63,759 nt of DNA from Hyphochytrium catenoides (taxonomy: Eukaryota; Protista; Hyphochytriomycota): assembly GCA_900088475.1 (NCBI GenBank), contig FLMG01001035.1, forward strand, positions 1-63,759, written 5' to 3'. The stretch's first letter is position 1; each line of letters opens with the position of its first letter. The notes below the pieces were generated by a model. That model saw only the letters and a list, made by a program, of their open reading frames with translations, was not told where the DNA came from and made no database searches. Shown here piece by piece: positions 44,178-56,333 of this stretch. The position numbers and the translations under genes are program-made.

Positions 44178-47100
44178 ATGACAGGAGGAACTCACAAGAG
44201 CGCGAGTACACGGTCCGGGAAGCCTGATACCCAACGTAGTAGAATAACCAAAGCTTCTTCGGCTTCCAAGGTGCACGATGAAAGTCTCTCTTTTTAGTGG
44301 TAGCTTTTTGAAAACTGAGCTCTTTGCCCGCTAGGAGGCCGCGCGCAAGAAGGAGATTGGCTTTGAGGCATGGGTTCTGAAGAAGGACAAGTATGACAAG
44401 GCGGTCAGCCTTCTTCAATCTTTGGACGTTGATCGAGCCAGTAATGATGATCAATGGGAGCAGATCACTAGGGTAAGAGGGCTTCAGCTTGTACCAGGCA
44501 CCAGTCCAACAATGGCCAATGTTAAACATGCCCGTTCGCCGCTGTGATACTTTCCTCCGCTTTCAATGCTCCTGGTGGCTTCGCTTTTTAAATTGGCACG
44601 CTTCCTGTCTCTTCAACGATGCTGTTCCGTCCTTGGCTTCTTACATGCTTCCAGTGTCTGGCTGCCGTAGACTGTTATATGGTGGGGGCTATTCGCCTCT
44701 CAGAGCTTCCGAGAGACAAGGACGAAGAAGCGGACCTTGATGGAGAACTCGCCTCAGATGAGGACGAGGACGAGCTACGCACCAGGAAGAGAAGCGGTAA
44801 GGCTAGTGGCTCCAGACAGAATGATGCCGGACAAACAGACTTGCTAGGTAAGCAAAACAGAGAGAGACACGTGTATCGACGTCAGTATCTCCATCATTGT
44901 ACAGCGCTAATAATCTGCTTGGTGTCGTGGCTCACGTGGATAGGTATCAACTCAAAAACTTCCTGCAATGAGAAGCTGAACGTCAAGCCGCTGCGTGGCC
45001 ACTGGCTCCGCTGGACAATGCAGCACAAGACCTTCCATGATGTGGAGATCTCAGAGCAGGAGTTTTATCAGTTCGATGCTGGTTCAAGGGAGAATATGAA
45101 GATTATGTGAGTTGTTGACTCAAGAGCCACACGCTATCTTGGTTCTTTCCCTCTACACCGGTTTCTTTGCTACTCAATTTATATGTGTCCCGGCGTGGCT
45201 GATGTCCTATTGATTGCTACAGAGACTCTGAAGATGGTAAGGGCAAGCGGTACATCTGCCCGTCGGTCAAAATCATTCGGGCTGCTAAGAAGAGCAAGGA
45301 TGATAACGCCAAAATCGCTCTTCGCAAGGCGCTAACAAAGGATGAGAAGCTGAGGAACAAGGTGAGCGCGAGCTGTGCGGAGTGGGAATCTAACGTCCAG
45401 AGGCTCCGGCGCACGGTCCTTTGGCTTACCCTTAATTCCCTCCCTCTCTGCACAGCTTTTTGTACGGCTCTGTAGGAACGCTTGGAAGGAGGCGCGTGAG
45501 GCAGTGCTGCAGTCCGTTCATGAACAAGTAGAAAAGCTCTTTGCCTCAGCTTCGTCGCCTAGCCGACAACCTAGAGACAAGGGAGGAAAGATTTCCGATG
45601 AATCCAAAGAGAAAATCAATGCTCAAAAACGAAGAAAGGCTCTGAAGCTGTTAAATGAGATGGGAAACCCTAAGCTAGTGTTGATGATTGAGGAGGACAA
45701 AGAGCAACAGGAGAAAAAAGCTAAAGAGAGCCAGATGGAGGCTGAGAAGGAGGCAAGCAGCATGCACGAGGTAAGGATCACCCCATAGCTCCTGCAGTGG
45801 AGCATCAGTCATTCGAGTAAGGCCATTCTTACGTCTTTGTCTACAGTCCTTTGCTAAGCGGAAAGATGAGTTGCGATTGAGAATGCCTCAAGGGGAGGAG
45901 CTCCAGCGTTTGCTTCGCTGCATGCGCAAGCCGGGCCGAATGGACTTCTCAGGTTCTAGAAAAGGAAGGGCGAAGCCTCCACAGGCGCAGATAGCGGCCT
46001 CATCCTTCGAGCTGATGCTTGGCAGTGGGCTCAAGTATATCCATGCACAGGTAACTCCGATCGTATCAGTATTAGGATGCCTAAGATTTGAACGTTTTAG
46101 CGACTTTCAATTTTTGAAGAACAAGGTGCGGCGTTTCACGGTTTGCATCTCTGTGTTCTTCTGACACTGCTTGGTCTCTCTCGACCAAGCTTGGTCTACT
46201 CTCCCATTGAACCCATCAATCGTGGGCCTCTTTGGTGCAATTCCTATCATCACTGGCTCTAAACGATCTTCTTCACCTTCAGGCTGGCGGGAAGGATTTG
46301 GAGCGTTCGAGAAAGCAGCTTCTAAGGGAAGGTCTTCTATATAAGGAGAACTTCAAGGGAGAGGTGCGCCTTGCTGTCCTGTTCTAATACCCACATCTTC
46401 GCCTTGCTAGATTATCATTGGCAAGAAAGAGAAGTGGAGACTAACGCGACACACCTTGTGCCAGGAGGAGCAATACTTCTTTGAGAAGAAAAATAGAATA
46501 GGCGATGGAGGGCAGAATGAGGATGAAGATCGAAAACAAAAGTTCTTGCAGTGGGCGGAGGTCAAAGAAATGACAGACAAAGCGGAGGCGTATCTAAAGT
46601 ACATCGCCACGCCTGTTGAGAAGAGAGACGAGGCGATGAAGGAGGTATGGAACACGAAGGAGTGGCATCACGTCCACCTTCTTCCTTCCTAATACGTATT
46701 TTCTCTTCTCTTCCGATAGTCAGCTTTGGCTCTTCATTGCATTTCTATTGCACGTTTAGGTCATCATTTGATTGTCACTGATGGCACCTTCTTGCAACCG
46801 ACGCCTTATACGCTATCCTTTCTTCTTCCAGAGAGAGGAGGATGAGGAGGATGTAGAAGAAGATTATTTTGTCCATGACCATTGGGAGGAGGTGGGCATG
46901 GCACTTAAGGGTGTGGACACTTCTCTCCTCACTCTCTGGATGAACTGGTCTAAGGGTTATAAGGTAAGGAGAGCCTGCCTGCTCTTGTACATCTTCCAGC
47001 TTACTTTTTCTCCGACCTGGCTTAGTGTTTTTATCGAGTCCACTCATCTTGTCCTGTTCTCCGCACACGGACTGCAATGCTCCTCTGTTAGACTGTCGCG

Positions 47101-50100
47101 GAGTGCAAGAAGTGCTGGGAAGGTTACGAGCCTCAAGGCGTTGAGGGAGAGGCAACCCTGAGGGAGATCAAAGACTCCCTCCTGCAGCAGGTTCGACCCC
47201 GGGGGATAAATCTCCGGGAAGAGTTCTTTCTAGCTTGCAAGAGGCGAGCCGAGGTGGCCAGCAGAAGAGGAGATGGGGAGGAACTCCAGATAAAGAACAT
47301 GGACGATCTGCCAGGTTGTCCGTGCTACTCATCTTCCGAACCATGACTTGTTTCTTGCTTCAAGTCTGACTAGCTCGTTATCCGGGCCCTAACTCTTTGA
47401 TATACACTTAGAGGAGTTCCGGAGCATCTCCAAAGCGGAGTTTGAACGTATTCTGCAGCGAGTAAAGGTGAAAGTGCGCAGTGAGGCTCTGGCGCAGCTG
47501 GTCTCTTTCTTTGACAAGAACCAGGATGGAAAAATCGATCTTAAGGAACTTGATCATTTCCTTGACCCCAAAGCTGCGGTAAGGCCTTCTAGCCTTTCTT
47601 CTAGTCCATCAGGTGTCTCTGTTTGCTTGTCTTCCTCTTTATAAAGCCCTTCTCCATTCTGTTCGGCTTCTTGCTCTGATTGATCAATGATCTGCACGTC
47701 CTATGGCTTCTCCCCTTTCTTTAGATTCAGGCTCGAAATGTCTTTATGTGCCTGTGTGGTACAATAGCAGCAGCGGGGTTATCACGTCTCTAAACTCCGT
47801 TTCTCTCCCTTCAGTTCCTAAAAGTCTCTACCGAATGGAGTATGAAGAAGCGTCAGACATATCTCGGTGTGCTGAAGGCTCTTAGCTCCGCCAAACGAGA
47901 AGAAGAGCGCGTACGGACTCTCATCAGCTCAGGCAAGCCTCCAGGTCCTCCAGAGCTTTTAAAGGGCATAGAGGAGGACGGTGACCCCACCTCGGAGCTC
48001 TTCCTCTATTGGAAACCACCGAAAGTTGCCGGCAACAATGTCGCCTCTTTCTATGTGTTGGAGACCTCAGGTGTTGGTGAGTGGCAGCAGCAGAAGGGCT
48101 GTGAGCGTGAAGACAACGTAGAAACACGCTTAAACCTAGCAATCTCTTCTACAGTGGAAGTATGAGCACGAACTACTAGCCGATGTGTCTATAGCAACTA
48201 TGCACTCATTACCCTTATTCTCTCCTACTTAGAGGGCAGCAAGAGCCAGCTTTCCAACGATTTCAAGGAGGTCTGCAGAGATCCTAAAGACTTTGACGAC
48301 AATGGTGGCGAACCCCGATGCTACTTCCGGGTGAGCGGCTTAAACCCCGCTTCCTCTTACGTCTTCAGACTCAGAGCGGTCAACGGCTTCGGCGCTGGAC
48401 CTTGGATCCAGGGAACCTTCACCACAGCTCCAGCGGCGCCACCGCAGCCGCTGCTTGTCCGAGTGACCACTGACAGCATCACACTGAGGTGGAGAAGGTG
48501 GGAGACGACATTGGAGTTCAGTGGCAGATCCTACCGATGTCTCTGGGCTATTCTTCAAGGCATGGTCTCTCTTTTTGGCATAGTCCCACTATGAGTGTCA
48601 GGGCTCTATCGTGATTTTCTTGTGCCTGCATTCCCTTCTAATCCCTTGACGGTTTTCATGTCCTGCAGTGATCAGGCCTACGCTGGAAAAATTCGCAGGT
48701 TGAAGCAGCTCTTTCAAGAAGCAGATGTGGATGGCAACGGGACCATTTCAAGAGACGAACTCATGAACGAGGTGCGTAGACAATGGACTTTCAAGCTTCT
48801 CTTGGTCCACCATTCGCGGCTTCCTCTTGAGTGTCTGCTTCTTCCTCTTTAGGAATGCAACGTATGCCTCTAGTTTCTACTGGTGGTCCTAACGCATTGA
48901 AGGATCCATGTGTGCTGATGTGCTTCTACTCTCAATATGCCCCGCAGCTTGAGAGAAGGCATCCAAAGCTCGTTGCTTTCCTCCAAAGAACGATGGTAAA
49001 AGGGGTTACTTCTTCTACCGGCGCACCCTTGTCACTGTCCGTCTTCGAGGCCATCGACACCGATGATAGAGAGAGTATTAGCTGGGAGGAGTTCGCACTC
49101 TTCTTCCAGGGCCTGGATCTGGATGATGAGACTGCTCAAGACTTGGGGATCTCTCCAGGTGATGCACAGCAACTATGGGATACTAATCGCACCTTGAGTC
49201 TAAGAACTTCTATCTTGAAGTCATCCTCCTCCCTCTACTCTGCATGGGAGTAGCTCTAATCGTTGTGCTCGCCCAGTCCCAGGCAGCAAGGAGAGTCGAG
49301 GCTCCAGCTTCTCTTCTTCTTCTTCATCCTCTAGTTCGTCTGGGAAGAGCACAGGAAAGGTGTCCAAGGTGCGGTACGTCCTCAAACAATGTCTCTCGGA
49401 CGCGGCGTCTGAGTATGTCGAGGTAAGCTGGAAGACATGAGAGGATCCTCCCAGAGGGCTAACCTCTTCTCTTTATGCAATCGTTGTCTCTCAGGTTTAT
49501 CGCGGAAGCAAGGTCCAGGTCGCTCTTCATGGCCTCAAGTCAGGCACGTCATACCAGGTATGGCACAGGAAGTGTTATGCTTCCCTGGCGTTCTAATATT
49601 CTCCTTTCTCGTGCCTCTGTAACCTCTGTCCTCTGGCACAGTACCGAGTCCAAGCAATGGGTCCGGATGGCCAGCTTAGCCTGCATAGTGATCCAGTGAT
49701 AGTACATACCCGACTGCAGACGCCGGAAGCTCCAATGGTACGGACATGAGATGGCTGTGTTACTGAGCCTCTTTCTGTTGACAGATTCTCCTGCCCTCGT
49801 GTCCCTCGTCTCCCCACTCCTAGCTTCCATCGCTCTCCGTGCTCCCGTTAACCTTAACTGCTGGCTCACCCTCTCTACGTCTTCAAGGTTGTCTCTGGCT
49901 CCGTCACAGCCACCAGTGTGAAGCTGAGATGGCCCGAGATGACAGCCAGTCCCCCGCTTAAGTCGGGTTCAGAGAGCAGGAAGGGAGCCAGGCAGAAAGA
50001 GCAGGTAAGCACAGATGGCAAGTAGCCTAGGAGAAAGGAAACCGTGAGAGTAGAGTCTTATGGCCGCAAACGCGGAACATGACTCGTCGATCGAAGCACC

Positions 50101-52454
50101 AATTGCCTTGCCTATCACCTGGTGTGCAACTCTACCCGCTCTGTGTATGTGCTACTTCCTGTGTATACCGTCTTACTATGTTGTCATCGGCCACCAGGTC
50201 GATAAGCTGTTGAAGGAGTGGACCAAAGCGAAGCAGGAGGAAGACGAGGGGCTGGATGTCCTTCGAAAGTTTGACGAGTACGACAGAGATGGTAGCGGCC
50301 TCTTGGATCTGCCAGAGTTCAAAGCGGTTCTGGAGGACCTTGCCGTAGACCCGTCACCTGAGGTGCTAGCCGAATATTTTGAAGAGTTTGACCAGGTATC
50401 TCATCTACCCGGCGGTTCAAAGCATGGAGTGAACCTTCATTGCGAGTTGCCATTCCTCTCTGTCTGACCATCTTGACTGTTGGTTAGGATAAGAATGGCA
50501 AGATATCTAGAGAGGAATTCGCAGCGTGGTGGAATAAGCCGCATGTTACCTATATCCTGAAGCGTGACGATGGTAAGTCATAGCCTGGCTTTGTGGAGGT
50601 GCAACTTCCTGTTTGTGGCTGATCAATCACTTCGTCGTGCTCTTCATGACCAAACTTATGTCCTCCAGGCATCTCCGAAGAGAAGCTCACACAGCTAGGA
50701 AGCAGTCTGCGTCGGTCCTTGGCCTCTTCTTACCCTCATGTCTGCTATAGAGGCAGAGGCAGAGTTGTGGAGGTGCACGGGCTCCAACCAAACACTCTGT
50801 ACCATTTCAAACTTAGAGCTGTCGGGTCGTTCAGCACCAGTGACCTGGGGAAGGAGCTTCAGGTCCGTGTCCCCCGTCTAGCTGTTCAAATGAGAGCGCT
50901 GAGGACGAACGTTCCCTTGTAATGTTTATTTCTGTTGCTCTTACTGTGTAGATAATGACAGCACCATCACCTCCCACGCCACCTGCCATTGTTGAATTGG
51001 GTGCACGGTCCGTCTCGATGAAATTCTACTCTGGCGATGGCGGTGCCTTTCGCTTCTTGGTGCAACTGCGATTCCTTGAGACCCTGCCAAGCAGTGCGCA
51101 ACCACAGTCGCGGGGTACGCCCAACGCATCACTAACAGGGCGGCAGAGCGACCCTTACGGAGACTGGAAGACAGCCTATGACGGCGATGGCTTCTGTACG
51201 ATAACTGGGCTATTGCCCAACAGGTCAGTACTGACTGCGGTTCCTTACCTCTGTCTCGACGCGGTTTCCTGTTGAGGCTCATTTAAGTTCCAGCCATTTC
51301 TCCTGGCCATCAATTATCAATATGCCTGATAGTAACAATGTCGTCCAGGACTTTTTCCCTCTCCTTGTCAGTGAAAAGACTTTCCTGTTTATTGGGCTCA
51401 GCTGATCTCACCCTATCGTTCATCTTCTGGGTATCGTTTGTCTTTTCAGCGTCTATCGAGTTCGGGTTCAGTGTGTCAACCGTCAGCAGATTGCAAGTGA
51501 GTTCAGCGAGGTAGCGCAGTTCGCGACCAAGTTACCGGATCGTGAGACCACCCTGAAGCCAAGCAATGTCTCGTCCACTTTCACGATGGAGCTACATAGC
51601 CCGTATGTCTGATCTTTGGGCTACCTTTGTTGCTAACTCTCTGTCGTCACGCTCTAAGCGTCCTTCTCCTTCCCCCCACTTGCGTTTCACACTTCTCCCA
51701 TAGCTTAGAGGCTGTGGTTGGAGACGCCATCCTCTTCCAAGAGAGGCTCATACGACATAAAGTCAGCGGAAAAATTGTGGAAGAAACCTATAGGCGTGGA
51801 ACAGCAGGCCCGGGAACAAGTCAAAGTCTTGACATTTCGACGTCACTTACACTGTCGATCGGATCCAACTCTGGCGGTAAATGACAGACACTTTCCATTG
51901 TTCTTTCTTTATCCGATTAAGTGGTTCTCCCTTTGCCCTCTTTTCTTTCCGAACAGATTATGTGGGGAAGCGAACTATAGCGGCGCGCGTGCTGTCCGCC
52001 GGCAGTCTAGGCGACGGTGCTTTGAACGTTGTAAGTCTCAAGAGATGCACTTTTCTATCAAGACAAAGCTGACTCCCTTGTTTGACTGCTTTGCAACTGT
52101 GCAGCAACTCCGGCTCGTCGTCATCTGGGCTACCGTAGTGGAAGAGATGGATGACCAGACTCAACTGCTATCCGCCAGGGGTCGAGCCAAGGTAGTGGAC
52201 GTGCTTTCTGAATGTCAAATCGTGCAGTCTGACAAAAGCTACATCTCTGTGCGAAGGCAAAGCAGAGTAATCCGAGGGACAATATCTCACAGGCAAAGCT
52301 GGTACCAGGCGCCACCATCCTTCGCGACGCGAGAATGATGACTCGATACGAGATGTTCCGGACGCGGTGGTTGCAGGAAGACGGCCGTGGTGAGGAGCTC
52401 TGGAAGAAGAAGCTTCGGCTTAACGGCAATCCACAGTTATCAGTTATCGAATGA
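44178..52454 (+). CDS. Large multi-exon protein: PriCT-2-like domains, coiled coil, EF-hands, four FN3 domains and a conserved C-terminal domain
   Basis: In-frame GT-AG exons traced by hand: 44178-44270, 44335-44472, 44655-..., last exon 52293-52454. EF loops DKNQDGKID, DVDGNGTIS, DTDDRESIS, DRDGSGLLD, DQDKNGKIS; FN3 motifs GLNPASSYVFRLRAVN, GLKSGTSYQYRVQA, GLQPNTLYHFKLRAV, GLLPNSVYRVRVQCVN. Not every internal exon was verified. Confidence 0.8.
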
Positions 52455-53195
52455 TAGGCTAAAGTAAGCCTGCTGTACAGCGATGTCTATAGCAGATAGA
52501 TCCCACGCTTCTCCGCCAGAGCAGTCTGTGGAGGAGCTCTCTGTACCTACCTGGCCAATGAGCGCACAGCAGGAAGCATCTAGCCTAGCGTTCTCCAAGC
52601 CCTAAGTTATTGTAATGTAGAAGGTGCTATGTTTGGCTTCTTTCTGTTCCTTGCTGTATGAGCTCATTAGCTCCATAGTATATGGGACAGATCCCTATCT
52701 ATCAACTGCAGATGAGATGCTCACAGAAGACATGGCGACATGGCATTGAGGGGGATGCACATTCAGAGCGTCTACAGAAATCTTCAAAAAGAAGCAGAAA
52801 CTCTATTTCTATCTGAAAGGCTCAGCTTTCGGTTTTGCAAGTATGCAAGTCGCGGGGCCCAAACTTGGTCTACTTTTATTTACAAAAGGTTGGAAACTGA
52901 AAGGTACGGTTTCATACTCAAATCTGTCTGAGTGATTTGCTTGATGAGTTAGGAAATTCCATGTTTAGAATTAAAAATATTTTGTTTGAAACTTCAACTT
53001 GTGGGAGCTGAAATGAAGGAAGTTCAGGATGATCATCCGTCGGCCGCCAAACTCAAACCGAGCTCTCAGTGAGCTTCACGCAGACTTGATAGCGAGGCAG
53101 ACGGGCCTGTCCGGAGATGCAATAGATGATCATCCGAACTCGATATTTCTTGATCACTGTGAAGAGGAAGAGCGATACACGGAGTACGAGGTAGA

Positions 53196-54300
53196 ATGGC
53201 TGCGTTTGGAAGTATCCGCGCCCTCCACTGGGTCTTCAAGATTACCGAACGAAAGCGGACTATGGAGTTCTATGCGAAGGTATTGAAGATGAAAGTCCTC
53301 CGCCATGAAGAGTTTGCCGCAGGCTGTGATGCACAATGCAATGGTGAGCTTGGACTCTTCCCCTATTGATCGTCTTTCGTGCTCACTCATTGATGTCAGG
53401 TCCATATGAGGGAAAGTGGTCGAAGACAATGGTTGGATATGGTCCTGAAGATGACCACTTTGTCGTGGAGCTCACCTACAACTACCCTGTGCCCTCTTAC
53501 AAATTGGGAAACGACTTTGCTCATCTAACTGTCAAAGCCCCGGGAGCGATCCAGCGAGCCCATGCCAAGGGGTTCAAAGTGAATGACGCTGAAGGTGTCA
53601 TATACGCACCCGACGGCTACGCCTTCCGCATCCTAGACGAAGAACCAGCACCGGGAGAAGATCCAGTTACAGAGCTCAGCCTAAATGTGACAGACCTTAG
53701 AAAATCTTTGGGTAAGGAATGTTACATGATCAGCGCCAGCGACATTGCCATGTTGTCTAACTTTCCAAGTCAATCTCAGACTTCTATGGGGGCGTGCTAG
53801 GTTTCTCTGTTCTTCGGCAACACAACGACAGCGCCAGCCTTCGGTGCGACCAGAGCTCGACCAGCTGCATTCTTACGCTTCTCAAACTCGCAGAGGGTGA
53901 GACGCTTGACCATGCTGAGGCTTTCGGGCGTGTGGCGTTCAGCATCAAGGACCCAAAGGTAGTCCAGAAGGCAGTCGAAGATGCGAACTTGGGCAGCATC
54001 CAGACGCCGTATATATCCCTTGACACGCCTGGCAAGGCAACTGTTCAAGTCGTGATCCTAACGGATCCGGACGGGTAAGCTCCTTGGATTAGGTTCAATG
54101 AGGTTGTTGGTATCTGAAACTGCTTATCGCCCCCGGCCCCTTCCTTCGTCAGCTACGAGATCTGCTTCGTTGGTGATGATGGCTTTAGAGAGCTATCTCG
54201 CGTGGATTCTGCTGCTCCAGAGCTGCTAGAGACGGCAATGGCGCAGGAAGAGAAGTGGAGCAGCAAGTATCCTAAGGGGCAAGCGCTACCTGTAGCCTAG
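53196..54300 (+). CDS. GLOD4: Glyoxalase domain-containing protein 4 (4 exons)
   Basis: [16 protein letters not shown]...[15 protein letters not shown]|[28 protein letters not shown]...[19 protein letters not shown]|[15 protein letters not shown]. Confidence 0.95.
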
Positions 54301-54706: not shown

Positions 54707-56333
54707 CTAACCAAGGGCAGGGAAGGCGGTGGTGTCAGCCACGTTGGGGGTGGAGCCAGCAGGTCCGCGAGGAGCNNNNNNNNNNNNNNNNNNNNNNNNN
54801 NNNNNNNNNNNNNNNNNNNNNNNNNNNNNNCTCCCGGCGGTCAAAGTCGCGGCGGCCACGGCCACCACGCTCGCGCGTGTCCTCAGGAGCGCTGGCTCTA
54901 AAGCCAACATCCTCCAGGACAACCTTCTTGCGGCCGGACTTCTTCTCTCTGAAGACCTTCTCAAACTATGGGGCGAGGTGACAGAGGTCGTAAGTCGACA
55001 GGAAGGAAGAAAATGGAAAAGCGGGAAGGACCCACCTGAGACTCAAGGAAATCAGGAGTCTTGCCCTCCTTCTGCAACTTCTTGGCTCCCTGGAAAGCAG
55101 TGGAGTCGACCTCACGGACCTCGCGCTTCTCGAAGGCTTCACCGCTGCGCTGAGTGCCCTTCTTCTTCTCGAGGTACTCCTTAAGCGTCATGGTAGTATC
55201 CTCAGGCTCAGCCTGGTACTCCTCCTCAACGTTCTCAACAGCCTCAGGAGCGCCTTCCTCAGGAGTCTCAGTGCTTGCTTCCTGACCCTGGGCAGCAGCC
55301 CTGTGTACGACATGACAAACGGTCAGACCTCAACATCGGTCGTACACTTGTCAGCATCAGGTGGAGTTCTTACACGGCATCTTGTTCGTTGCCCCAGTTG
55401 GCCTTTCCAGCGCCGCCGCGCTTCTGCTCACGGCTGCGGCAGGAAGTTTTATATTAGCAGCGAAGCTTTAGAAGCAAGATGGAAGGCACTCAACACTTAC
55501 CCGCGACCAGTGCCGCTGTGGCGGTCGTACTCTCTACCACGAGGACGTCTCTCTCCGTCCCTGTAGCCGCCTCTTCTCTCACCCTCACCACGAGGGCCAT
55601 GGCTTTCCTTTACGTCACCCTCTGCAGGTACTCCGCTGTCACGCGGTGGGCGCTCACGGTAGCCGCCCTCACGGAATCCACCCTCACGGTAGCCTCCTTC
55701 GCGGTTAGGGCGAGGACCACGGCCTCCACGGCCGCCGCGGTCTCCACGGCCACCACGGCCACCACTGGAAGACATTGACAAGAATAAGATTGCAGCCATG
55801 ACCCCAGCCGGATCAGATTTATCTACATACCGCTGCGCATCTCTGTTGTCCGATCTGCCGCCCTTCTCAGCGTTGTCCCTTGCGCCCTTCTTGTCGCCTT
55901 TTGTCAGGAAAGCACGTAGATTGAGAACGATAAAGGGAAGAAAGGCGCGCAGAACCTTAGCTTACCTCTTTCCTGCGTCTTCTTGGCAGCTGGAGCGGGC
56001 TCCGCCACCTTGGGCTTCACGTCCTCCTCCCCTTCGGAGTCGAGCAGAGCGAAGATGTTCTGACTCTGCAAATATAAGTCCAGGCATGGCAAGAAAGAAG
56101 CTTTAGATGCGAGGACATATGTACAGGCCAACGGAGATCCCTATACAGCCGCAATGTTGCCATCTATGACGTGCCCAGCAGTTGGAGCTCCAGAGTTCAA
56201 ATATAGGCCCAGAACGATTCTTTTTCTTCCGGATACCCGCCTGCGCTAAAGGTTCCGCATACGCCTACCACTCGCCATCTCTTTCATGACCGATCCTTAC
56301 ACTATAGCCTCTATCCGATTAGACACGTACCAT
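54707..56333 (-). CDS. Stm1/SERBP1/HABP4-family RGG mRNA/ribosome-binding protein (multi-exon)
   Basis: M|SQNIFALLD N-terminal motif, RGG repeats, REYDRHSGTGRG, KREARRRWKGQLG region, MTLKEYL, C-terminal PNVADTTAFPALG*. Confidence 0.9.
54776..54830. other. Assembly gap/masked run of 55 N inside a GC-rich RGG exon
   Basis: N run in the sequence. Confidence 1.

Follow-up and report, generated by a model that had tools for sequence, protein, structure and literature searches.

Can an EF-hand pair be carried inside an FN3 domain, so that the host is interrupted by the guest and then resumes? This question is raised by a gene of Hyphochytrium catenoides on the plus strand of contig FLMG01001035.1 (assembly GCA_900088475.1), which was analyzed over its entire length of 63,759 nucleotides (nt), hereafter the window. 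The gene encodes a row of four FN3 domains, two of which (FN3-2 and FN3-3) are split, while FN3-1 and FN3-4 are not, and each split domain contains an EF-hand pair. As judged from the sequence, this nested architecture is very probably real.

Exon chain of the gene

The probable extent of the gene was determined by manual construction of a GT..AG chain, which is doubtful at 44655-45106.

44178..52454, + strand: whole gene, probable extent, approximately 1,570 amino acids (aa), with ATG at 44178 and TGA at 52452-52454

Within this gene, a total of 13 exons were connected at 47815-51602 on the plus strand, with AG acceptors and GT donors throughout, agreeing phases, no stop codon, and introns of 72-226 nt. 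In the published assembly of this organism, consisting of 4,758 scaffolds and the mitochondrial genome, the mean exon and intron lengths are 228 bp and 208 bp, respectively (PMC5795050). The spliced 13-exon model provides the numbering referred to as "model aa".

47815-48076, + strand: exon E1
48233-48497, + strand: exon E2
48669-48771, + strand: exon E3
48948-49158, + strand: exon E4
49283-49422, + strand: exon E5
49495-49557, + strand: exon E6
49642-49737, + strand: exon E7
49888-50004, + strand: exon E8
50198-50395, + strand: exon E9
50488-50572, + strand: exon E10
50669-50862, + strand: exon E11
50952-51223, + strand: exon E12
51450-51602, + strand: exon E13

Splitting of two FN3 domains between strands B and C

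The exons were scored one by one with Pfam and with a local FN3 profile of 105 positions, made from 3,453 FN3 copies in the proteins matched by an exhaustive search with E2, and the joined model was scored against the local FN3 profile only. The order of host and guest segments along the gene is as follows.

47938..48426, + strand: FN3-1, uninterrupted, model aa 42-152, containing the intron 48077-48232 (local FN3 profile 19-104, 42.1 bits)
48427..48495, + strand: FN3-2, N-terminal part, strands A and B, ending in ..ITLRWR, model aa 153-175 (local FN3 profile)
48496..49368, + strand: insert 1, EF-hand pair, 134 aa, model aa 176-309 (Pfam matches of E3 and E4; loop grading)
49369..49710, + strand: FN3-2, C-terminal part, strands C to G, VRYVLKQ .. 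PVIVHT, model aa 310-371 (local FN3 profile)
49711..49935, + strand: FN3-3, N-terminal part, strands A and B, ending in ..VKLRWP, model aa 372-396 (local FN3 profile)
49936..50544, + strand: insert 2, 108 aa, model aa 397-504, a linker of approximately 25 aa and a helix followed by a canonical EF-hand pair (Pfam matches of E9 and E10)
50545..50960, + strand: FN3-3, C-terminal part, strands C to G, VTYILK .. KELQIMT, model aa 505-581 (local FN3 profile)
50961..51531, + strand: FN3-4, without inserted domain but with a long C-C' loop, model aa 582-696 (local FN3 profile)

FN3-1 was recognized as a member of the Pfam family fn3 (PF00041) from E2 alone (3.6e-7, 30.7 bits against the cut-off of 25), and FN3-4 was matched by the local profile on both of its exons (positions 4-33 on E12 and 73-101 on E13; 6-96 for the whole domain, 26.8 bits). 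In FN3-2 and FN3-3, the sequence leaves the FN3 profile right after the Trp of strand B and restarts at the Tyr of strand C. The N-terminal part of FN3-2 matched profile positions 2-26 within E2 alone (E 1.9e-5), ending at this Trp, and positions 2-30 at aa 150-178 of the joined model, whereas its C-terminal part matched positions 37-104 at aa 310-379 of the intact model (E 2e-8); the match is unbroken across the E6|E7 splice, E6 covering positions 56-74 and E7 positions 75-104. Likewise, the N-terminal part of FN3-3 matched positions 16-30 on E8 alone and 1-30 at aa 371-399 of the intact model, and its C-terminal part matched positions 53-87 on E11 alone (E 8e-7) and 53-104 at aa 538-589 of the model. 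With Pfam fn3, E11 alone stayed under the cut-off (0.007, 17 bits). The EF exons gave no match at all to the local FN3 profile.

Upon deletion of the inserts from the model, the two halves of FN3-2 fused into a single match over profile positions 5-89 with 35.0 bits, as compared with 17.3 and 22.2 bits for the separate halves, and those of FN3-3 fused into a single match over positions 4-89 with 26.7 bits, as compared with 10.9 and 20.5 bits. In both cases, the halves are complementary on one FN3 profile and jointly cover strands A to G, as expected for members of the family. Since the complementary halves fuse into full-length matches without the inserts, the inserts appear to replace the BC loop (profile positions ~27-38).

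The 87-aa run at model aa 310-396 is uninterrupted and contains all seven strands, and could thus be read in another way, in which the C-G strands of unit 2 combine with the A-B strands of unit 3 into a circularly permuted FN3 and the EF pairs serve as linkers. In such a domain, however, only about seven residues (RLQTPEA) would connect strand G to the next strand A. By canonical FN3 topology, these two ends should be at opposite poles of the sandwich, farther from each other than such a connection could reach. Nothing would remain for strands A-B of unit 2 and strands C-G of unit 3 to pack against, and FN3-1 and FN3-4 share the register while showing the ordinary, unpermuted order of strands. 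Permutation is therefore highly improbable.

EF-hand pairs within the inserts

A total of four EF-hand loops are located within the two inserts, the last being interrupted by intron 9.

48724-48759, + strand: EF loop 1, canonical
49056-49091, + strand: EF loop 2, degenerate
50282-50317, + strand: EF loop 3
50390-50395 and 50488-50517, + strand: EF loop 4

In insert 1, E3 matched Pfam EF-hand_1 (1.1e-7, 31.3 bits, cut-off 25.4) and E4 gave a weak match to EF-hand_7 under the cut-off (0.0026, 18.5 bits); in insert 2, E9 matched EF-hand_7 (5e-8, 33.6 bits, cut-off 30) and E10 matched EF-hand_1, by itself under the cut-off (0.0011, 18.9 bits). By profile, both E9 and E3 therefore belong to the EF-hand families (PF13499 / PF00036). 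The EF-hand_7 profile runs on from one exon to the next, from positions 3-25 on E3 to 32-66 on E4 and from positions 5-51 on E9 to 52-65 on E10, so that the junctions E3|E4 and E9|E10 are backed independently of the splice signals.

The loops were graded against the canonical 12-residue pattern (Asp1, Asp/Asn/Ser3, Asp/Asn/Ser/Gly5, Gly6, hydrophobic 8, Glu/Asp12). Three of the four nested loops (model aa 195, 448, and 484) are canonical, including Gly6 and Glu12, but loop 2 (aa 247) is not. Among solved chains, insert 2 is closest to centrin (1.1e-9) and calmodulin (6.6e-9). It does not belong to the calmodulin/centrin family itself, which is defined by free-standing proteins with four EF-hands in two lobes; the likeness concerns one lobe only.

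The two lobes are connected to their hosts in opposite manners. In lobe 1, the N side is tightly joined and the C side loosely, an acidic, Ser-rich linker of ~55 aa following the EF pair there, and lobe 2 shows the reverse, with only about four residues between its last helix and strand C. Each lobe thus has on one side a linker of 20-55 aa, probably flexible. A run of ~12 Ser codons was observed at 49300-49345, in the linker that leads from EF lobe 1 back to strand C of FN3-2; this stretch, probably disordered, is a potential phosphorylation tract.

Borders between host and insert

In domain insertion of the A1-B-A2 type, a host domain is interrupted by a complete domain of a foreign family and then resumes (PMC13114784). 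This arrangement was found twice in the protein, by the profile coordinates of host and guest and by the predicted collinear exon chain. Three of the host-insert borders lie inside single exons: E10 encodes EF loop 4, its exiting helix, and strand C of FN3-3; E8 encodes strands A and B of FN3-3 and the beginning of insert 2; and E5 encodes the linker at the end of insert 1 and strand C of FN3-2. These three borders are thus free of any assumption about splicing, and since the exons are collinear, the nested order should be present in any mRNA that contains them. All the FN3 and EF-hand motifs quoted in the original prediction were present in the plus-strand translation of the phase-consistent GT..AG chain, and its proposal that EF-hand pairs lie inside the second and third FN3 domains, flanked by the Trp strand (B) and the Tyr strand (C), agrees with both the profile coordinates and the exon anatomy. 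The one correction to it concerns loop 2, which is degenerate.

An artefact of the gene model, in which other splice sites are used or more than one gene is present, would place FN3 and EF-hand domains in simple tandem or in separate proteins. The junctions were picked by eye among many alternative in-frame GT..AG pairs, and some donors of the 13-exon chain are weak (GTGGGA, GTGATG, GTCCGT). Most of the alternative junctions, however, just trim exons, so their number says little, and any mRNA with E8, E9, E10, and E11 gives strands A-B, an EF pair, and strands C-G in this order. Moreover, E10 and E5 fuse insert and strand C without splicing, the EF-hand_7 and FN3 profiles continue exactly over the chosen junctions, and half-FN3 domains from separate genes would not fold. 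An artefact is accordingly considered improbable, and the nested gene is retained.

Isoforms without the inserts were also considered. The combined lengths of E3 and E4 (314 nt) and of E9 and E10 (283 nt) are such that no frame-neutral exon skip yields an uninterrupted FN3, and skipping of E9 alone would leave half an EF pair fused to strand C. Cassette-exon isoforms were rejected because the frames of the skipped exons do not permit them. A gene on the opposite strand was likewise rejected, because only Arg/Ser-rich antisense open reading frames (ORFs) were seen there, which were taken as noise.

Flanking parts of the gene and copy number

Outside the 13-exon chain, the following parts were assigned to the same gene.

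47412..47578, + strand: upstream exon with a canonical EF-hand, loop DKNQDGKIDLKE at 47513-47548 (Pfam EF-hand_5 4.8e-7, EF-hand_7 2.6e-6)
51704..52454, + strand: C-terminal ~165 aa, four small exons (51704-51876, 51957-52030, 52105-52191, and 52293-52454)

The upstream exon matched positions 18-62 of the EF-hand_7 profile, and the genome-wide scan also gave a match there (47423-47551). The hand encoded there is the second of a third EF pair. This pair has one canonical loop, is formed by the last two exons of 44178-47578, and stands in plain tandem ahead of FN3-1. The N-terminal ~690 aa (44178-47578) are charged and helical, and apart from this one EF-hand no Pfam family was found in the flanking exons. 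The C-terminal ~165 aa gave no significant Pfam match, and an atlas look-up of one C-terminal exon gave no usable match. In the exons read, neither a signal peptide nor a hydrophobic or membrane segment was seen.

The gene is single-copy and has no paralogue in the 61-Mb genome assembly (4,759 pieces). Genome-wide, 132 EF-hand_7 matches and 68 fn3 matches were detected, and the two are interleaved at this locus only. Elsewhere in the genome, large genes of either family were observed. A stop-free frame of 2,490 aa with at least 14 tandem EF-hand-pair matches (G000:C1946:44392-47904, minus strand) looks like a giant intronless poly-EF-hand protein; about 18 EF-hand_7 matches within 12 kb (G000:C1348:22825-34832, minus strand) represent either one very large gene with many EF-hands or a cluster of tandem genes; and an open frame of 11,308 aa with many FN3 matches (G000:C4192:43110-67103, minus strand) represents a giant intronless FN3 protein in an intron-rich genome. 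Within the window, the next downstream gene (~53160-54300, plus strand) is multi-exon and resembles, by eye from the translations, a glyoxalase-domain protein, followed by a short N run at ~54780-54840 (an assembly gap, with X in all three frames).

Search for relatives

Word searches with E2 and with the open stretch around E9 gave no relative among the eligible proteins of ~48-240 aa, a size range that excludes a full-length orthologue. Three metagenome loci were examined as relatives and rejected as generic FN3 arrays, and an exact look-up of six intact ORFs of the window found none of them on record.

A related arrangement was found in dinoflagellates, after two proteins with an EF pair in an FN3 had come up by chance among the matches of the exhaustive E2 search. 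In P0144, a transcript of Biecheleria cincta (EukProt), the FN3 profile is matched at positions 8-53 and 62-104 around a 136-aa insert with an EF-hand_7 match (region aa 1380-1615); the protein is ~2,300 aa long and carries 19 FN3 domains, with one nested unit. Four members of this family are on record (P0144, and P0151, P0125, and P0152 from Logan transcripts), and their EF-hands are absent from the precomputed Pfam lists. The EF exons of the H. catenoides gene showed no sequence match to this family, which points to an independent event rather than orthology. The presence of an EF pair inside FN3 in dinoflagellate transcripts argues that the combination is viable.

In the literature searched, no paper was found on an EF-hand inside FN3, nor one that joins calmodulin, monobody, and domain insertion; the text and the examined part of the supplements of a 2026 survey of 48,551 insertion events contain no EF-hand/FN3 pair. 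The original prediction knew of no characterized protein with this layout, and the search brought up none; the dinoflagellate family, itself uncharacterized, uses another loop of FN3. Domain insertion is common, but a Ca2+-sensor lobe in the binding-loop pole of FN3 is not described in the same literature.

Possible role of calcium

In canonical FN3 topology, the BC loop is at the N-terminal pole of the domain, and so is the C'-E loop. Each EF lobe should therefore sit at the joint with the preceding FN3, that is, at FN3-1/2 and FN3-2/3. The protein would begin with a helical region that closes with an EF pair, continue as a rod of four FN3 domains, and end in a small tail. Upon a rise in cytosolic Ca2+, the single canonical loop of lobe 1 and both loops of lobe 2 would be filled, and the lobes could open like sensor-type EF pairs, either gripping a helix of a partner or altering the geometry of the FN3-FN3 joints, so that the FN3 rod could act as a Ca2+-dependent scaffold or adaptor. 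Since each lobe is held on one side by a long linker, a displayed sensor lobe is more likely than a rigid switch of the strain type.

The steps of this model differ in strength. Binding of Ca2+ by at least one lobe is likely, as predicted from the loop residues. Control of partner binding or rod geometry by Ca2+ is a tentative proposal. More doubtful still is a natural calcium-gated FN3, in which Ca2+ acts as a switch on the binding surface at the FN3 pole or on how the rod bends, and which arose apart from the dinoflagellate version. Taken as a whole, the picture of one real, single-copy, multi-exon gene for a cytosolic FN3 rod with EF lobes in the BC loops and with a Ca2+ mechanism is somewhat favoured.

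The nested layout could also be real while the EF lobes are structural decoration or constitutive binding modules, with Ca2+ always or never bound and a calcium-independent rod. One degenerate loop among the four and the long flexible linker of each lobe, which makes strain-type coupling unlikely, fit such a protein. The other three loops, however, are canonical at all ligand positions, Gly6 and Glu12 included; the closest solved relatives, centrin and calmodulin, are of the sensor type; and a protein without signal peptide would meet Ca2+ that is low at rest and fluctuates. Mere decoration is thus rather unlikely, and the calcium-responsive rod is the explanation preferred here.

Several observations weigh against this explanation. 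The splice junctions are by-eye predictions from the genomic sequence, and the short strand-C pieces by themselves gave no significant match to the local FN3 profile. EF loop 2 (DTDDRESISWEE) has Arg and Glu at positions 5 and 6, respectively, and the spacing in lobe 1 is unusual, with 52 residues from loop start to loop start as compared with 36 in lobe 2. Since each lobe has one long, probably disordered linker, its mechanical coupling to the FN3 core should be weaker. Among the best 150 matches of the exhaustive HMMER search with E2, all giant multi-FN3 proteins with scores summed over 7-52 repeats, no orthologue could be discerned. Finally, the AF2 model of the dinoflagellate nested module is of low confidence (pLDDT 57.6) and usable for the order of secondary structures only.

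If calcium alters the shape or the partners of the rod, the protein would represent a new natural design of calcium-regulated scaffold and a template for switchable FN3 (monobody-type) binders. A calcium-gated FN3, if true, would be nature's equivalent of the engineered insertion switches and would show a new way to build a Ca2+ sensor.

Comparison with known systems

The lobe of insert 2 is similar to those of calmodulin and centrin in having two canonical 12-residue loops with starts 36 residues apart, whereas insert 1 differs in one degenerate loop and a longer spacer between the hands. Calmodulin and centrin are four-hand, two-lobe proteins; here, a single lobe is embedded in another domain. 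The dinoflagellate multi-FN3 proteins likewise have an EF-hand pair in one FN3 of a long array, with the host profile halved around an insert of ~136 aa, but the insertion is in the C'-E loop (profile 53|62), different from the B-C loop (26|37) of the H. catenoides gene. The use of two different loops of the same FN3 pole by EF pairs in two unrelated protist lineages suggests this pole as a favoured site.

Insertion of more than 100 residues is tolerated also by the FnIII-2 domain of the insulin receptor. Its insert domain, located in the C-C' loop, is for the most part disordered and undergoes processing by furin; unlike the H. catenoides inserts, it is no folded EF-hand sensor. In monobodies and adnectins, the BC, DE, and FG loops at the N-terminal pole form the binding surface of the FN3 scaffold. 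The BC loop, which is the insertion site in the H. catenoides FN3 domains, is thus a binding loop there, although monobody loops are only a few residues long.

In Camgaroo, as proposed for the H. catenoides rod, a Ca2+ sensor is placed at a surface position of a beta-rich host and Ca2+ binding alters the host (PMC6747460). In this engineered topology, Ca2+ binding is passed on from the sensor in a beta-barrel loop to the host, and the design requires that the termini of the sensor be close together (PMC6747460). Camgaroo is engineered, with a GFP-like host, a whole calmodulin, and short linkers, whereas the H. catenoides protein is natural, with FN3 as the host, single lobes, and one long linker for each lobe.

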